Below are positions 1 to 49,504 of a stretch of 64,000 nt of DNA, in pieces. Origin of the DNA: Trichosphaerium sp. ATCC 40318 (lineage: Eukaryota > Protista > Tubulinea); the NCBI GenBank assembly GCA_038496445.1, contig JALMLS010000213.1, positions 310,001-374,000 on the forward strand, read 5' to 3'. A model generated the notes under the pieces. The model did no database searches and was not told the origin of the DNA. It saw nothing but the letters and a program-made list of their open reading frames with translations. A program made the position numbers and the translations under genes. How positions within the stretch are numbered: position 1 is the first letter of the stretch; every line of letters starts with the position of its first letter.

Positions 1-428
1 CAAATGGAGCAAAAGGAGCGTCAGCCCCACCACGTGTTACTTCAAAGATACCACAAGTGCTATGTCAAGAACACTGGAAAAATGGTGAACTTGAAGGAGA
101 CTATAGGCGATGGTATGAGCATGGCCAACAGCATGTTCATTGTACATATAGAAATGGTAAGCGACATGGAGAATACAAGGAATGGCATAAAAATGGTCAA
201 TTGTTTATACAGTGTCAGTATGTCAATGATGAACGAAATGGAGAATGTAAGCAATGGTATGACAATGCCCAATTGTGGAAGCAGTATCATTACTTAAACG
301 GTTTGAAACATGGAGATTATAAGTGTTGGTATTATAATGGACAAGTTTGGGTACATTGGGTTTATGCCAATGGCAAGTGTATTAAAGGAGGAGAACAGGA
401 CGTTGACTATACATGTACAGTTTTGTAA
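1..428 (+). CDS. MORN-variant (MORN_2/YwqK-like) repeat protein, 3' part (5' end outside window), C-terminal CaaX motif CTVL
   Basis: Frame open from base 3 to the stop at 426-428; repeats of G-E-Y-K-x-W-x-x-N-G-Q-L; similar to 844..1944 (CQEHWKxGxLxGDY); ends YTCTVL*. Confidence 0.85.
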   Translation, partial: NGAKGASAPPRVTSKIPQVLCQEHWKNGELEGDYRRWYEHGQQHVHCTYRNGKRHGEYKEWHKNGQLFIQCQYVNDERNGECKQWYDNAQLWKQYHYLNGLKHGDYKCWYYNGQVWVHWVYANGKCIKGGEQDVDYTCTVL

Positions 429-843
429 AGAAAGTGGCCATTAAAGCCTTTTGCATAGCTGAACGCTAGACTTCCTTATAGTCCCTGTGGTTTACTGTTA
501 GAACTCCTAGTTAGAACCAATAGATGCAGGCATAAGTTAGTGTTCCAAACCACTAGCCAGGTATTTAATATCTCTGAAATCGTTTTGTCATTTTTTTTTT
601 GATTTTGTACAAAGAGTACACGTGATACAAAAAACAGTGTTTTTAGATAATTAAAGCCTTCGTACATTCCCACAAACTAGCAGACATTTCTTTAAGGTTT
701 ACTAATTAACCGAACTGATACAATGACAGTTGTGCTTCTAGGAAGTCAGCCACATTGAAACAAAGAAGGATAAACAAAAAGTGTGGTTTTGTGGTCTGTA
801 CAGAGGTGTCTATCGCTTTTTATTAGATCAAAACAGTGCGAAC

Positions 844-1944
844 TTATTGTATACTACACGACTTGTTTGGTTGATGGTTCAATGGATTGAACTCTTTTTC
901 CACTCTACCATAATCAAAATAGAAGTGGTCATTTAACTTGCCATTTTCAAGCCACGTTTTAAGCTCTCCATGTAGCTCTCCATATACATAACAACATTGT
1001 TTAGATAATTGACCATTCTCAAACCAATGCTTACACTCTCCGTCAAGTTTATCATTAACATACCTACACTTTGTGACTAATCTCCCATTTGTTTGCCATT
1101 CCCTATACTCACCATCACGTTTACCATTTACATAACAACAAATATCCCGTATTTGACCACCCTGATACCAACGCTTGCACTCTCCTTCTAGTTTATCATT
1201 GACATACTGAAAATGGCAAAACAACTGACCATCCTCATACCACTCCTTACATGCTCCTTCACGTTTATCATTAGCATATTGACACTGTATATGTGATGTA
1301 CCATCTTCATACCACTGTCTATACTCACCATTTCGCTTACCTTGTACAAAATAGCACCTCAGTTCCATGTTACCTGACGAGGCATGCCAACGCTTGTACT
1401 CTCCTTCACGTTTTCCTTTCACGTAATTACAGTGTTCCTCTAATTGTCCATTTCTAAGCCAACTCTTATAATCCCCTTCTTCTTTACCTTGTTTGTGATA
1501 ACATAGCTTTCGTATATACCCATTATCATGCCAACACTTGTATTTTCCTTCAAGCAGACCATTGACAGAAACACACTTAATATAAAGTTTACCATTCGAG
1601 TGCCAATGCTTGTGTTCTCCCTCACGTAACCCATTGACATAGATACAATGTTCTATTAGTTGTCCATTGACATGCCACTTCTTATAATCGCCATCAAGTT
1701 GACCATGTTTCCAATGCTCTTGACATACAACTTTTGATTTGATGGGAGCATCTTTGTCAACTGTAATTTTTAGCCATTTGCCATGTTTCTTCAGTTCGCA
1801 ATCAAACCTTGTTGTCACTGCGTTGTGTTTTGATAAACAAGGCCACTTTGAATACAATTTACAGTCTAAATCAACGATATCGAGGTGTATTTCAATGGGA
1901 AGGCGAAATAAGTGGCAATCGCCCACAGGTACTGAGTTATTCAT
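844..1944 (-). CDS. F-box + MORN-variant repeat protein with C-terminal CaaX (CSIQ)
   Basis: Uninterrupted 366-aa ORF; N-terminal LFRLPIEIHLDIVDLD...WPCLSK is F-box-like; about 11-12 repeats of about 24 aa; ends KSCSIQ*; probable 5'UTR intron at about 1955-2015 (GTACAT...ATACAG). Confidence 0.85.
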   Translation of the reverse strand: MNNSVPVGDCHLFRLPIEIHLDIVDLDCKLYSKWPCLSKHNAVTTRFDCELKKHGKWLKITVDKDAPIKSKVVCQEHWKHGQLDGDYKKWHVNGQLIEHCIYVNGLREGEHKHWHSNGKLYIKCVSVNGLLEGKYKCWHDNGYIRKLCYHKQGKEEGDYKSWLRNGQLEEHCNYVKGKREGEYKRWHASSGNMELRCYFVQGKRNGEYRQWYEDGTSHIQCQYANDKREGACKEWYEDGQLFCHFQYVNDKLEGECKRWYQGGQIRDICCYVNGKRDGEYREWQTNGRLVTKCRYVNDKLDGECKHWFENGQLSKQCCYVYGELHGELKTWLENGKLNDHFYFDYGRVEKEFNPLNHQPNKSCSIQ

Positions 1945-2139: not shown

Positions 2140-2565
2140 GTAGACTTCGATTTTGGTACTCTTACAGAGTACAACTTGTTGGCATTGGTGACCCCCCATC
2201 ATCCCAGGTTTTGCATAAACCATCCATCTTACCATCTACAAAATTACAAACTTGGTACAAAATACCAGGGAAGAAGAGTATGCACGCTCCGTTTTGTACG
2301 CCATTACCCTCAGCAAGAAGGAACAACTTTTACAGCGATACTCCGGATATTACCATCCTATAGCCATACTGCGTATTCATAAGCGTAACGGTATGGTTTG
2401 TTATTAATGTTCGCTCAAGGTTTGCTACGCAAGGAATCCAAATACGGCTTTTTTACTTTGTTTCATTGTCGAGATTGTGTGCTAGTAGGCTTTTGTGCAA
2501 CAGCTGCAATGAAATGCTGAAGTCAACAACAAAGTCTTGGCAGTCTCTAAATTTTTGTTGACATT
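2140..2565 (-). pseudogene. Decayed F-box/MORN-repeat paralogue
   Basis: Minus-strand translation gives MSTKI*RLP (F-box-like start with a stop) and NGVQNGACILFFPGILYQVCNFVDGKMDGLCKTWDDGG (MORN repeat), separated by stops and frameshifts. Confidence 0.6.
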
Positions 2566-2704: not shown

Positions 2705-6325
<3,621 letters not shown>

Positions 6326-6575: not shown

Positions 6576-7073
6576 TCACGTGAGCAACTTGGCTTTGGTC
6601 AGTTTGTCAAAAAGAGCATCCCAAATCTTTGTCCTACTCTTGTAGAGTAAAATGAGCCTCTTAGAGTATACAAAGATACCCTTTGTACCACCAGAAGATA
6701 CTCTTACTGAATGGAATGTTTTTAAAACGTTTTTAGGCACTTTGTAGTTCCCAACTGCCTCTCCGTACGTCACGCGTGGTTCTACCGTAGAAGAAAGCAA
6801 TTCCGTGATTTCTATGCGTAAACGGAGTGGCTGAAGAGCTTTTGAGCCATTAATCACCGCTATCCAAAGATGCTTGAAATAGCTGTCATAGAATTCATTA
6901 CAAGTACTTGAGAACCGAACAATAGAACGCCAATCGAGTGTGTAGATGATTTTGGTTATAATTACATTAGGAATAAGTCTTATGTCCTGAGGATCTGCTA
7001 TAACCTTGTAACGTAAGCGACCAGATCGTCTTACAGGGCCAGTATGGGTACGCTTTTTCCGTTTTCTTGACAT
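6576..7073 (-). CDS. F-box protein with basic NLS and an XPA-C-terminal-like segment
   Basis: MSRKRKKR NLS; IRLIPNVIITKIIYTLDWRSIVRFSSTCNEFY fits the F-box pattern; RVTYGEAVGNYKVPKNVL resembles the I/VTxxEAxxxYxLxxxxL motif. 3' end uncertain. Confidence 0.65.
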   Translation of the reverse strand: MSRKRKKRTHTGPVRRSGRLRYKVIADPQDIRLIPNVIITKIIYTLDWRSIVRFSSTCNEFYDSYFKHLWIAVINGSKALQPLRLRIEITELLSSTVEPRVTYGEAVGNYKVPKNVLKTFHSVRVSSGGTKGIFVYSKRLILLYKSRTKIWDALFDKLTKAKLLT

Positions 7074-9319: not shown

Positions 9320-9607
9320 ATAGGATCAGGTTGGAAGTACAAATATGCGTGATCACGAGGACAACTAAAGACTCAAAACATGTGGATTGATGGCAAAATG
9401 CATGGTGAAGAGAAAGAGTGGTATGAAAATGGGCAACTGCAGCACCAATATATGTGGGTTAATGACAAACAAAATAGTGAATCTAACTGGTTTGAAAGTG
9501 GACAACTGTTTGAACAAGCAATGTGGGTTGATGGTAAACGAAATGGTGAGAATATACAGTGGGATCAAAATGGACAAGATACAACACACAACTTTTGGGT
9601 TGTGTGA
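9320..9607 (+). pseudogene. Truncated MORN-variant repeat gene
   Basis: Three MORN repeats (WIDGKMHGEEKEWYENGQL); in-frame TGA at 9350-9352 close to where the repeat Trp is expected (KYKYA*SRGQL); no F-box found upstream. Confidence 0.6.
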
Positions 9608-10602: not shown

Positions 10603-11625
10603 ATGAAAGCAAAACGCCAAGTAAGAGTAAACTAGATGGTTAAAACAACTAATATTAAACTGTAGCTCAGTTCCAACCTAGAACAAGACTATAACCGTCT
10701 ATTGAGGCTTCCATTGGAACTTCAACTTGAAATTATAGATCTAGATTTTGATATTTATCTGAAATGGCCTTTATTATCAAAGTACACAGCAACAACAACG
10801 AGATTTGATGATGACTTACAAAAAAATGGTAAATGGTTGAAAAAACAAAGGAAAGAAAATAAATGGAAATTATTGGATCGAGTGTATTGGACACAAGGTA
10901 AACGTGATGGAGACTGTACTCACTGGTGGCGCAGCAGTGGTCATTTGTATTCGCAATGTAATTATGTCAATGATAAGATTGAAGGAGAGTACAAGTTTTG
11001 GAACGATGACGGACAACTTGATAAACAATATTTTTACATCAATGGTAAACGAGAAGGAGAATACAAACATTGGGATTCTTCAGCAATGTTACGTGAACAT
11101 GGTCATTATTTAAATGATAAATTAGAAGGAGATCAAAAAATATGGTTTGCAAATGGCCGATTGGAGAGTTACTGCCAATATGTCAATGGTGAGCGAGATG
11201 GAGAGTATAAAACTTGGTTTCCCAATGGTCAATTGGAGTTTCATGGAAGCTTTGAAGAGGGTGTATGTAAAGGAGAACACAAGACTTGGTACTCTAATGG
11301 ACAGTTAGACTACCGTAAAAATTATGTTAACGGCAAGTCAGAAGGTATACAAAAGGTTTGGTACATAAGTGGTGAATTAGCAAGAGAATATTATTGTGCA
11401 AATGGTGAGATTGAAGGAAAGTACAAGAGGTGGTATAAAAATGGACAATTGCAGGAGCAGCAAAATTATGTTAATGGTAAAAATGAAGGAGAGTACAAAT
11501 GTTGGTATGGTAATGGACAATTGAAAGAGTACAAGTTTTATACTGACGGTAAAGTTGAAGAGCATAAACTATGGAATGAAGATGGCAAATTGTTTGAACA
11601 AGGAAGAAACAATGTATATTTTTAA
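10603..11625 (+). CDS. F-box + MORN-variant repeat protein (no CaaX)
   Basis: Exon 1 10603-10620 (MKAKRQ), 45-nt GTAAGA...CTGTAG intron 10621-10665, then in-frame LSSNLEQDYNRLLRLPLELQLEIIDLD...WPLLSK and about 10 MORN repeats; clear paralogue of 844..1944. Confidence 0.85.
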
Positions 11626-20000: not shown

Positions 20001-23000
20001 ATGAATACAGCATTGCTGGAAGCCATACATAAGAAACCAGGTAACTGTACTATTGCTTCTATGTGCTAAAATAGACTACAGAACTAAAAGATGGTTCTAA
20101 AACCTCTAAAGCACCACCAATATTACCCCCAACACCGCCGAGCGTACGAGTGCATGCCCAATCAAAAGAGATAAACACAAGTGCTCCTCCACCGCCTCCT
20201 CCGCCTAAAAATGCCAAAAACGACATCCCTGGGCCGCCACCTCCTCCAGGAGCAGCAGTTAAGTGCCCTGTACCTACAGCGCCTCCAATGCCGCTTAAAA
20301 CTGGTGTCCCAGCCCCACCACCTCCTCCAGGGGCAAATAAAGGTGCTATTCCACCACCGCCACCAATGGCGAGTACAGGACCACCAAAACCACCTAGCGG
20401 TACTGTTACGCGTCGAAAATGGACAACAGCGGTAGATAAATCTGAAAAGCCTGAACTTCCTCCGTTTAAGATCAGTACGTTCACAACTAGCTCTAAAAAC
20501 AAACAACCTAACAAATACACAGAAAAAGGAGATTACCTATTTTTGGATTGGAGTAAAGTAGATGATTTACTTTTATCAGATACAGGGAGCGCAGTACGAT
20601 TTTTTCCTTTTTGTCGACTTTGTGTCGCTTATTTTTTGTTCTAAAGGGTGTATTCTTTATCAAAACACCTACTGGTACTGTAGTTATTAAAGGTTGCTCC
20701 GATATTGTACAGGTAGGCTAACATTTCGGCAAGTTTTATGCTCAGTGTTCTTAATTTTTTTTTTAAAGCAAGTATATGCTACGGAGCTTGCACTCATTCT
20801 TGATGTTGATGTACCAAAAATGAGAGTAATTGATTGGAGCGCACCAAGACATCGTTGGAGTTTATTAAAGAGCAAGATGACAAGCCTTGCGGTAAAGCGC
20901 TATGGACAAGGAAAGGCATGCAAAGTTAGAAAAGAACTTAACCGTGCACAATTCTTGGCAATGGAGGTATTGTAGTATGTTATAGTATCCTAGAGAGCTA
21001 ATATTTTACCTAGGTTGTAGTCGGTAAAGAGCTATTAGCTTATGGAGCAGATGGATTAAAATACCTATTTGGGCTATCAGCAGAGTGCGAGCTTTGAAAT
21101 TGCTACTGGCATTGTTTTAATAGAGTTTTTAGCTTTATTGGTGACAGAAGAGGTTCAAGAAATAGATTGCGCCAATTGGGTAGAGTGATTGGTTATGATA
21201 TACTCATAAATAACTGGGATCGAGTGCCATTGATATGGGAGAATGAGGTAGATTGATTGGGACTATTAAAGAAAAATCTAATGTAAATAGGGAAACTACA
21301 GTAATATTATGGTTGAAGCATTGCCTGGTGAAGATGGTTTGCCAGTGTACGTATAAGAATATATTATACAGGTTTTATACTAATGGTTTAAAATAGTATC
21401 CGTATTGTGGGTATTGATAATGGCACTAGGTAATAGAGTCACTTTGGTTTTTTCTCGTTTTGTTCTAACTTTTTTTTTTGCATTAGTTGTCTCAATAAGA
21501 AGATGCACAGTGTAGGGTATAACAAATATGTAGAAAAAATTAAGAAATGCTTGGAATCGATAATAAAGAACCCTTGCAAGGAACTCCCTGCTTTGAAAAA
21601 GTTCAGGGAATATGTAAAGATGGCAACAGGCTTCGACATGGGAGAAGCAGCTTCATTGCAGGTATTGATGATTTTTTTCAATTTGGTTGAAAACAGATGA
21701 TGAGCTTGTTAACACTGTTGCTTATAGATTCAAATGGGTATTCTGGAAATAATTATCAAAGCATCTAAGCTACAGCTTGATGATTTTAAAAAGCTGAAAA
21801 CAAAGGTTGCGGGTATGATTGGCACTGATTGGGCAGACGTTTGGAAATCTGGATTAGGCGTCATATTCCCAGAGTTTTTTAAGGATATTGTTGATCTTTT
21901 TAAGTCCTTTGAGGAGAGTGCTAATATTTTATTGGCTAAATATCCAACAACTCATATCATGCAACCATGCACATCTGCGATTAAAAGAGATGAGTTTAAA
22001 CATGATAATGTAAAGATATTAGTTCTACAAAATTTTGGATTCCATGCTAAGGAAGGTGCCAACTTTATTCGTGGTTTAGTTGCTAAAGAAGAGCGTAAAC
22101 CTGGTAAGCTTTATAATATCAACCGATTCTTAATTATACTTACTGTTCATCTAGACTTTATCATTTGGCCTGAGCATGCATTAAGATACAGCGGTTTGTA
22201 AGTTGGTTTTTTTTCTCGCTATTTTCTGGGTTGTTGGCTTATTCTTATCGTTAATGTTTGTAGGGTAAACGACTCTATTTCACCTGTTAAGGACTACTGT
22301 AAGCTAGCAAAGGAACTTGAAGCGTACATTGTACTTGGAAGTACACTAGAAGTAGAGGATGGTAAAATGTACAATACGGCAATAACAATCAGCTCAGATG
22401 GTCAGTATCTTGGAAAGTATCGTAAAAGAAAACCTCTTGGAAACCATACAGTACCTGGTACTGAAGTTGCGATATATGATACAAAATTTGGAAAGATAGC
22501 AATCATGTACTCTTGCCTTTTTTGAAGTTTTTTTTTTCTCACTTTTTTCGTGATTTAGGATATGCTTTGACATCGAAAATCGAGATGTTTTTGATGACAA
22601 TGTTGCCGAGAAACCATTCCTTATACTCAATCCTGTATTGATCCCATCGCCAGCATTAGAAAATGATGATAAGAAGATTAACGTAGCGTGGAATATTGCT
22701 AGAAAATCAATGGCAAGGAAGTTTGAAGCACTTGCTACTAAGCATAACTTTACGCTTGTTCGTTGCGATAAACCTTTTGAGAATGAGAAGATGGTATTTG
22801 GTATGTTGATGTGCTTGAGATTTTGAAGTCAGCTAACACTCTTAAACTATAGGTACTTCTCAGGTTGTAGGTCCATCAGAAACTGTCCTTGCTCCAAAGA
22901 TGGGAACTTGTCATTTCTATGCTTATGCAGATTATCATATTGACAATCAATTCCAGGTTCGTCATGGAGTTCTTCTCTACACATATTTCTATGTGGTTGT

Positions 23001-48746: not shown

Positions 48747-49504
48747 CTAACCTCTTTTCAATCTGCTGTACTCAGCGTATTGTGCCTTCAAAGCTGTTTC
48801 AATAAATTTAACAGCTTTAACTGGATTTGCGGATTCTCCGCATGTAAAAGTGTCCACAGCTGCATACCCATGCTCTGGCCACGTATGTATGCTTATATGA
48901 GATTCTGCTAACAGGGCTATGCCCTTTTGAAGGGTTTGTGAGCAATAAAAAATCAAATGGTTGTATGACGCACTGTTACGCCCACTGGTGAGAAGGAGTG
49001 AACCTAAACGGAAAGTTTGTTTGTTGAAAAGTAGTTCTGTAAAATTATGTACCCGCACTGAACCAATCAATGTGGCGTTACCAGCACGCACAGAGCCTTC
49101 AATGACAGCTTTTATTTTTGTTTCATCATTGAGAATTTCCTTATTACATCCGTACAGGTCAGCTAAATATACCATTAAGCGTGTCGACATCGCCACTTTA
49201 CTGTGGAGTGTACCGATGACGTGTTTGCCATGCTGTATATTATCGTATTTAAAACCGCGCTAAAACAACTTAAAATACATCATCACGCGGCCAGATAACG
49301 CGCTAGTTCGAAAAACACAAATTAGCATACATTTTCACCAAACGAACTTCGTGATAAGTCTTTCCATCGATGTGGCTCTGCATCTTGAAGCTTATTCAAA
49401 GCCGAGAACACAAATAAATACTGCAAAATCACTAGAAACGCCAATAATACAGCTGTCAACTGTACAACGCGAATCACCAATCCAAGTTTCGGCCCGTTTC
49501 CCAT
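48747..49504 (-). CDS. speD: Prokaryotic-type S-adenosylmethionine decarboxylase proenzyme (SpeD) with an N-terminal transmembrane signal-anchor
   Basis: Spliced model: TM exon ending SSFGEN|RGFKYDNIQHGKHVI|ADLYGC...GNATLIGS|VHSFSPVGVT|GIALLAESHISIHTWPEHGYAAVDTFTCG...LKRG*; ESH self-cleavage motif intact. Confidence 0.85.

Follow-up and report, generated by a model that had tools for sequence, protein, structure and literature searches.

Prenylated F-box proteins are known from Legionella pneumophila AnkB and from mammalian FBXL2 and FBXO10, in which an N-terminal helical module is followed by target-binding repeats and a C-terminal CaaX box, and in which the F-box has been experimentally proven (PMC2916131, PMC9988375, PMC11042265). 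The present analysis concerns a 64,000-nucleotide stretch of DNA (hereafter the window) from the marine amoeba Trichosphaerium sp. ATCC 40318 (contig JALMLS010000213.1, positions 310,001 to 374,000). At its left end lie two open reading frames (ORFs), designated A and B, that encode MORN_2 repeats and end in CaaX boxes. The complete one, B, follows the AnkB, FBXL2 and FBXO10 order of parts, with MORN_2 β-hairpins in place of the ankyrin or leucine-rich repeats of AnkB and FBXL2. The N-terminal module of B is a real conserved domain of ~50 residues, not previously described, and its combination with a MORN_2 solenoid marks a sizeable undescribed family. We tentatively read A and B, at clearly less than even confidence, as members of a lineage-specific multigene family of modular adaptors.

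The draft genome of Trichosphaerium sp. has a G+C content (GC) of 37.69%, with a mean intron of 75 bp and a mean exon of 154 bp. Among its ~1,580 giant-virus-derived gene models, the commonest domains are F-box and MORN, and dozens of models are named 'YwqK family antitoxin' or 'MORN repeat protein (Pacmanvirus)' (PMC10521059). F-box and MORN are handled separately in that paper, which describes neither the N-terminal module, nor the fused architecture, nor the CaaX ends (PMC10521059). The window itself is AT-rich eukaryotic nuclear DNA, 37-38% GC throughout, with few long ORFs.

A first reading of the window, made from the sequence only (the sequence-only reading), had proposed two tail-to-tail MORN-variant paralogues with CTVL and CSIQ ends, and this was borne out by the ORF coordinates and by matches to Pfam MORN_2 (PF07661), with B scoring 106.7 bits (E = 4.7e-32) and A 44.2 bits (E = 9.1e-12) against a cut-off of 29.6. 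The genes converge, with a gap of 415 bp from stop to stop, and their repeats are 46-48% identical. ORF B comprises an N-terminal helical module, a MORN_2 β-hairpin solenoid and a CaaX tail. The AlphaFold model of full-length B was of high confidence (predicted local distance difference test, pLDDT, 91.2; predicted template modelling score, pTM, 0.81), and a Foldseek search with it returned MORN1 and junctophilin-2 as top folds (template modelling score to target ~0.4-0.55; E ~1e-9 to 1e-6), with Rhs-type β-hairpin repeat proteins also among the matches. As modelled, the repeats of B are a β-hairpin solenoid of the MORN_2 type.

Several known protein groups share this repeat architecture in part. 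Bacterial YwqK-like proteins have the same PF07661 repeats and gave the top repeat-level matches (24-45% identity), but they possess neither the N-terminal module nor a CaaX box, and the context here is eukaryotic; neither a toxin-like neighbour nor a prokaryotic operon, as would suit a YwqK-type antitoxin, was found in the window. Canonical MORN proteins such as MORN1 and junctophilin share the β-hairpin solenoid fold and are membrane-associated scaffolds, but they belong to PF02493, and junctophilin is held by a transmembrane helix rather than a prenyl group. Proteins combining DUF5758 with MORN_2, encoded on giant-virus-like contigs, resemble B in having a constant N-terminal domain before the repeats and in occurring as tandem paralogues; their N-terminal domain (PF19062) is, however, unrelated and has no match in B or in the further window copy C described below. 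An example is provided by the tandem DUF5758 and MORN_2 genes at L014:10001-11875, on a giant-virus-like JGI contig of 290 kb, which stand beside U-box, ankyrin, kinase and AAA genes.

In the first database search, the sole protein with a B-like N-terminus was an MMETSP transcript (P0005), and a word-based search with the N-terminus of B alone gave no match, so that an exhaustive profile search was needed. A three-sequence profile of the module was therefore run against 1.84 billion cluster representatives and recovered 51 of these at E ≤ 1e-3; for 22, E was 1e-10 or lower. The 21 members whose origin was traced derive from MMETSP transcripts or JGI sample 3300016894, the one exception lying on an ENA contig. 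Almost the whole family thus goes back to a single transcriptome of a marine protist. The family transcripts have 36-37% GC, similar to the window, and the relatives are thus known as transcribed sequences. The same Trichosphaerium strain was probably sequenced in MMETSP, which would account for the relatives found there. Searches for the N-terminal module in JGI metagenome contigs found none, that collection evidently not including the transcriptome sample. The copy on the ENA contig (L013:1586-2362, 48% GC) belongs to another eukaryote, with MCM, Rpb6 and Exo70 exons beside it and no clear MORN_2 array after it.

Across the family, the module follows the consensus LLxLPxELQxxIxxxDxxVYxxWPLLCKxTAxTxRFDxxLxKHGKW, with MORN_2 units next, and P, L, A, R and G positions are near-invariant. 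No entry matching it was found in Pfam, NCBIfam or the PDB, the NCBIfam scan returning noise only. In the AlphaFold model of B, the module has helices at residues 11-14, 17-24, 28-36 and 39-45, of which the three from residue 17 on follow directly after L15-P16 (pLDDT 83-95); modelled alone as 62 residues, the module reached a pLDDT of 82.7. Adaptor families are laid out in this way, with a conserved N-terminal module ahead of variable repeats.

The sequence-only reading had also seen an F-box-like start in the complete gene, and the motif LPxE..I...L(S/C)K is indeed present in B. By eye, the module mirrors the hydrophobic pattern of the Pfam and Skp2 F-box consensus, with LP-x-E-(I/L)-x-x-x-I, a short loop with D, a second amphipathic helix and an (L/V)-(C/S)-K pattern. 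Helix starts fall directly behind LP, behind (L)D and on (S/C)K, as in the Skp2 F-box, and the first loop is one residue shorter than in the consensus; the comparison is a lead rather than a test. The layout is also that of an F-box protein, the N-terminal module (residues ~10-60) being followed by a protein-interaction repeat domain (55-346).

A body of results weighs against an F-box. No F-box model was matched in a Pfam scan of B even at E ≤ 1, nor in a re-scan of ten family members (0 of 10); among 51 family N-termini, PF00646 was matched once, at E 0.094, as one of just seven weak matches overall. Profile searches of the PDB with the module found no F-box chain at E ≤ 10. Foldseek with the 62-residue module model gave no PDB match, the domain being too short for Foldseek to decide, and against BFVD it gave two matches at E 7-9, one of them a Pandoravirus 'Morn repeat protein'. 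Where F-boxes have a Trp behind (C/S)K, the module has T-A, and its strongly conserved WPLL and RFD..KHGKW are not known as F-box features. The absent Trp, the WPLL and the continuation of RFD..KHGKW into the first β-strands of the solenoid call for caution in naming the module. The F-box identity put forward by the sequence-only reading therefore gained no significant match in Pfam, in the PDB profile search or in Foldseek against the PDB and BFVD. A divergent F-box is plausible but unproven, at what we judge to be roughly even chances.

With no F-box test significant, A and B might instead be prenylated MORN scaffolds without an SCF (Skp1-cullin-F-box ubiquitin ligase) link, membrane scaffolds akin to junctophilin and MORN1. 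The N-terminal module would then serve this family as a cap or for binding a partner, its likeness to an F-box being superficial. Conservation running past the helices into RFD..L.KHGKW is what a capping element would show, and the MORN1 and junctophilin folds, together with the CaaX features of A and B, fit the same picture. A mere cap, however, would not demand such conservation of the module among paralogues that are 30-50% identical, and the register of LP-E-I...(S/C)K, its spacing and the helix order agree with an F-box and with an F-box-like/MORN protein of viral origin. We regard such scaffolds as somewhat unlikely.

That viral protein is encoded in IMG/VR, in which giant-virus metagenome-assembled genomes (MAGs) bear MORN_2 genes and in which the combination of an F-box-like start with MORN_2 was found. 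In viral genome UViG 2974536336 (1.47 Mb), the paralogues L011:2045-2797 and L007:220-1140 begin with IPNEILDIICF..SRVCKKF and continue with MORN_2 units. For the N-terminus of L011:2045-2797, F-box (E 0.044) and F-box-like (E 0.076) were the sole Pfam families, both below cut-off; L007:220-1140 matched MORN_2 alone and no F-box. The amoeba and viral modules share (L/I)PxE(I/L)..I....(S/V)CK with identical spacing, and hhalign aligned the amoeba module profile to L011 gap-free in the expected register (P 0.005) and to both viral paralogues at P 0.003. The likeness is weak, the hhalign probability being just 7-10%, which counts against an F-box link, and the viral genes differ in having ~23% GC, no CaaX box and neither WPLL nor RFD..KHGKW. 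Attempts to enlarge the viral F-box-like/MORN family returned the same two genes only, and the giant-virus-like contig around the DUF5758-MORN_2 gene held no annotated F-box gene to serve as a reference. Directly upstream of L011:2045-2797 lies an F-box-like and ankyrin gene (L011:453-2021), so that one N-terminal idea is joined to two repeat types side by side.

Another ORF of the window, at 6576-7073 on the reverse strand, was considered as a bona fide F-box bridge and rejected, its Pfam F-box-like match reaching only E 0.17 and hhalign to the family profile giving nothing. It encodes 165 residues, is basic at the N-terminus and contains an F-box-like stretch, IRLIPNVIITKIIYTLDWRSIVRFSSTCNEF, and had no relatives in the PDB or the other databases searched.

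Turning to the C-termini, the residue X of a CaaX box directs the type of prenylation, Q being of the farnesyl and L of the geranylgeranyl type. Both ends are canonical by these established rules, as the sequence-only reading had it, with Cys at -4, V (A) or I (B) at the a2 position, and L or Q at X. Poly(A) signals lie 12-20 nt past the stops, which for this reason look like true ends, splicing past them being unlikely; transcripts of family relatives finish ~20 nt past an AATAAA-type signal. The tails of B (20 residues) and A (17 residues) start after the last YxNG turn and cannot be aligned with each other, and C-a-a-X is kept in both. An origin of the boxes as a phase-cut repeat 'C-x-Y-V', Cys being found at position 23 in 37% of units, was rejected, as a hidden Markov model of the repeat unit aligned to neither tail. 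In the AlphaFold model of B, pLDDT declines along residues 341-366, with values below 50 at 358-366; the tail is predicted to be disordered and so probably accessible. Judging from these termini, A and B, if expressed, are likely to be prenylated.

Given the family composition, a canonical CaaX box would arise by chance with p ~0.005-0.01 per protein and ~1e-4 for A and B together. Among the 55 known C-termini of the family, two canonical boxes were observed and 0.26 expected (Poisson P 0.028). Both ends being fully canonical in this way speaks against an accidental origin, under which A and B would be plain soluble proteins from a rapidly evolving MORN_2 family and would owe the Cys at -4 to their high Cys content, as does the placing of both boxes on extra non-repeat tails that other inspected members do not have. 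The retention of the box in tails that have diverged past alignment, one of them predicted to be disordered and accessible, argues the same way. In favour of an accidental origin stand the counts for Cys at -4 alone, which was seen in two of the 55 C-termini with 1.5 expected, in none of the 51 representatives and in neither of the further window copies C and D. B is, moreover, 6% Cys with five internal CaaX-like 4-mers. Both tails lack a second membrane signal, be it a polybasic stretch or another Cys, and binding to a membrane via one prenyl group would accordingly be weak. We consider an accidental origin of the boxes unlikely. Counted over the whole family, the outcome that would refute the sequence-only reading, CaaX termini no commoner among paralogues than by chance, is nearly reached. 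The term 'prenylated family' was too strong, as none of the 51 representatives has Cys at -4, nor does paralogue C. CaaX is a trait of A and B, or of an unseen subfamily, and not of the family.

In many family N-termini (P0005, P0121, P0169 and others), one Cys or a run of them (CCC, CC, CCCC) stands 4-6 residues before LP, and two members begin with MGA. These could be palmitoylation or myristoylation sites, and might anchor the copies that have no CaaX box to membranes by another route.

The two paralogues of the sequence-only reading are real, but it had overlooked further copies, which were revealed by tblastn with B over the window (Table 1). Paralogue C has the N-terminal module in common with B but neither a CaaX box nor a clean ATG: nine codons after the in-frame ATG at 10636 comes a TAG (10663-10665), and the 27 nt from 10639 to 10665 run GT...AG and are a multiple of three. 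The TAG is either a nonsense mutation or part of an unusually short 27-nt GT-AG mini-intron. Fragment D is shorter still, and a one-unit relic is in all likelihood what is left of a paralogue that has decayed. As C, D and the relic are decayed, the MORN_2 cluster is under birth-and-death turnover, a point against the adaptor reading.

This damage would also suit the view that the genes are decaying relics, without present function, of lateral transfer from a giant virus or bacterium. The absence of introns in an intron-rich genome agrees with that view, as do the nearest repeat matches, bacterial YwqK-like and giant-virus MORN_2 proteins, and the prevalence of MORN and F-box among virus-derived Trichosphaerium genes (PMC10521059). 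B, however, is an intact ORF of 366 codons with a host-like GC of 38%, compared with 19-26% for the viral MAGs, and is followed by a poly(A) signal. Family members are transcribed, and the N-terminal module was not found in IMG/VR. Relics of this kind are, in our judgement, very improbable.

Table 1. Features of the MORN_2 genes in the window (positions in the 64,000-nucleotide stretch)
Feature	Position	Strand	Description
ORF A	3-428	+	C-terminal 141 residues visible, start beyond window edge; in frame from base 3; five repeat units and 17-residue non-repeat tail; C-terminus ...DVDYTCTVL-stop
CaaX box CTVL of A	414..425	+	geranylgeranyl-type X = L; stop 426-428
ATTAAA, variant poly(A) signal	440..445	+	12 nt past A stop
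AATAAA	819..824	-	20 nt past B stop
Non-repeat tail of B	847..906	-	20 residues; ends in CaaX box CSIQ (847-858), farnesyl-type X = Q
ORF B	1944->844	-	intact, intron-less, ATG to TAA, 366 residues; C-terminus ...NKSCSIQ-stop
MORN_2 solenoid of B	907..1782	-	residues ~55-346; 11 regular 24-residue units and degenerate ends; pLDDT mostly >95
N-terminal F-box-like module of B	1765..1917	-	residues ~10-60; B starts MNNSVPVGDCHLFRLPIEIHLDIVDLDCKLYSKWPCLSKH
One-unit MORN_2 relic	2165-2302	-	NFVDGKMDGLCKTWDDGG; upstream of B
Fragment D	9380-9607	+	75 residues, three MORN_2 units; no N-terminal module, no CaaX; ends NFWVV-stop
Paralogue C	10702-11625 (10636 if from in-frame ATG)	+	307 residues from 10702; N-terminal module and MORN_2 units; ends NNVYF-stop

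Elsewhere in the window, genes for a myosin head, a RabGAP-TBC, an NDUFV2-type 2Fe-2S protein, a cyclophilin and an FHA protein are split into short exons, and Rfam and tRNA scans gave no matches. Two further genes, for a prokaryote-type S-adenosylmethionine (AdoMet) decarboxylase and a glucose/sorbosone-dehydrogenase-like protein, are of kinds described in Trichosphaerium as laterally acquired and intron-bearing (PMC10521059). The former (48747-49196, reverse strand; PF02675, 5.4e-31) is apparently split by an in-frame intron-like insert, in agreement with that description. Exons of the latter (2984-5113, reverse strand; weak PF07995 matches) adjoin a mucin-like exon rich in Thr/Pro repeats. 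A poly-proline exon at 20150-20644 on the forward strand resembles a formin FH1 region (PPPPPPP..GPPPPPG..APPPPPG) and had no match in a Pfam scan.

Under the adaptor reading, the constant ~50-residue module would dock on a shared partner. Skp1/SCF is the most plausible candidate, given the F-box-like motif, spacing and helix order of the module. The variable MORN_2 solenoid would bind variable targets, whatever substrates these might be, and a farnesyl (B) or geranylgeranyl (A) group on a flexible tail would place the complex on endomembranes. In going from module and solenoid to a prenylated SCF adaptor family, we infer two things, Skp1 binding and prenylation with the membrane location it would bring, and the latter applies only to A and B. 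The logic would be that of AnkB, FBXL2 and FBXO10 as lipid-anchored SCF substrate receptors, with several differences: the F-box is statistically undetectable in the amoeba module, AnkB is an effector that bacteria inject whereas A and B are eukaryotic nuclear genes, and the tails of A and B carry no polybasic or palmitoyl second signal.

A more specific form of this reading, which we think quite doubtful, holds that a subfamily of amoeba MORN_2 proteins acts as lipid-anchored SCF substrate receptors, with a highly divergent, Skp1-recruiting F-box common to giant-virus F-box-like/MORN proteins, a hypervariable solenoid for the choice of targets and prenyl tails that would direct them to organelle or phagosome membranes, as a convergent host counterpart of AnkB. 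Such receptors would perhaps be used in an arms race between amoeba and virus or amoeba and bacterium; a defence role of the family is purely conjectural.

Should the module turn out to bind Skp1 as an F-box does, and the tails to be prenylated, an SCF ligase would for the first time have a substrate receptor of the MORN type, and the design of AnkB and FBXL2 would have a host-encoded parallel. A function would then be at hand for a 'MORN / YwqK-like' gene expansion that ranks among the largest described from any amoeba and has so far been filed only as laterally acquired (PMC10521059). Irrespective of the SCF link, the module is an undescribed domain that marks at least 51 sequence clusters and merits definition as a family.

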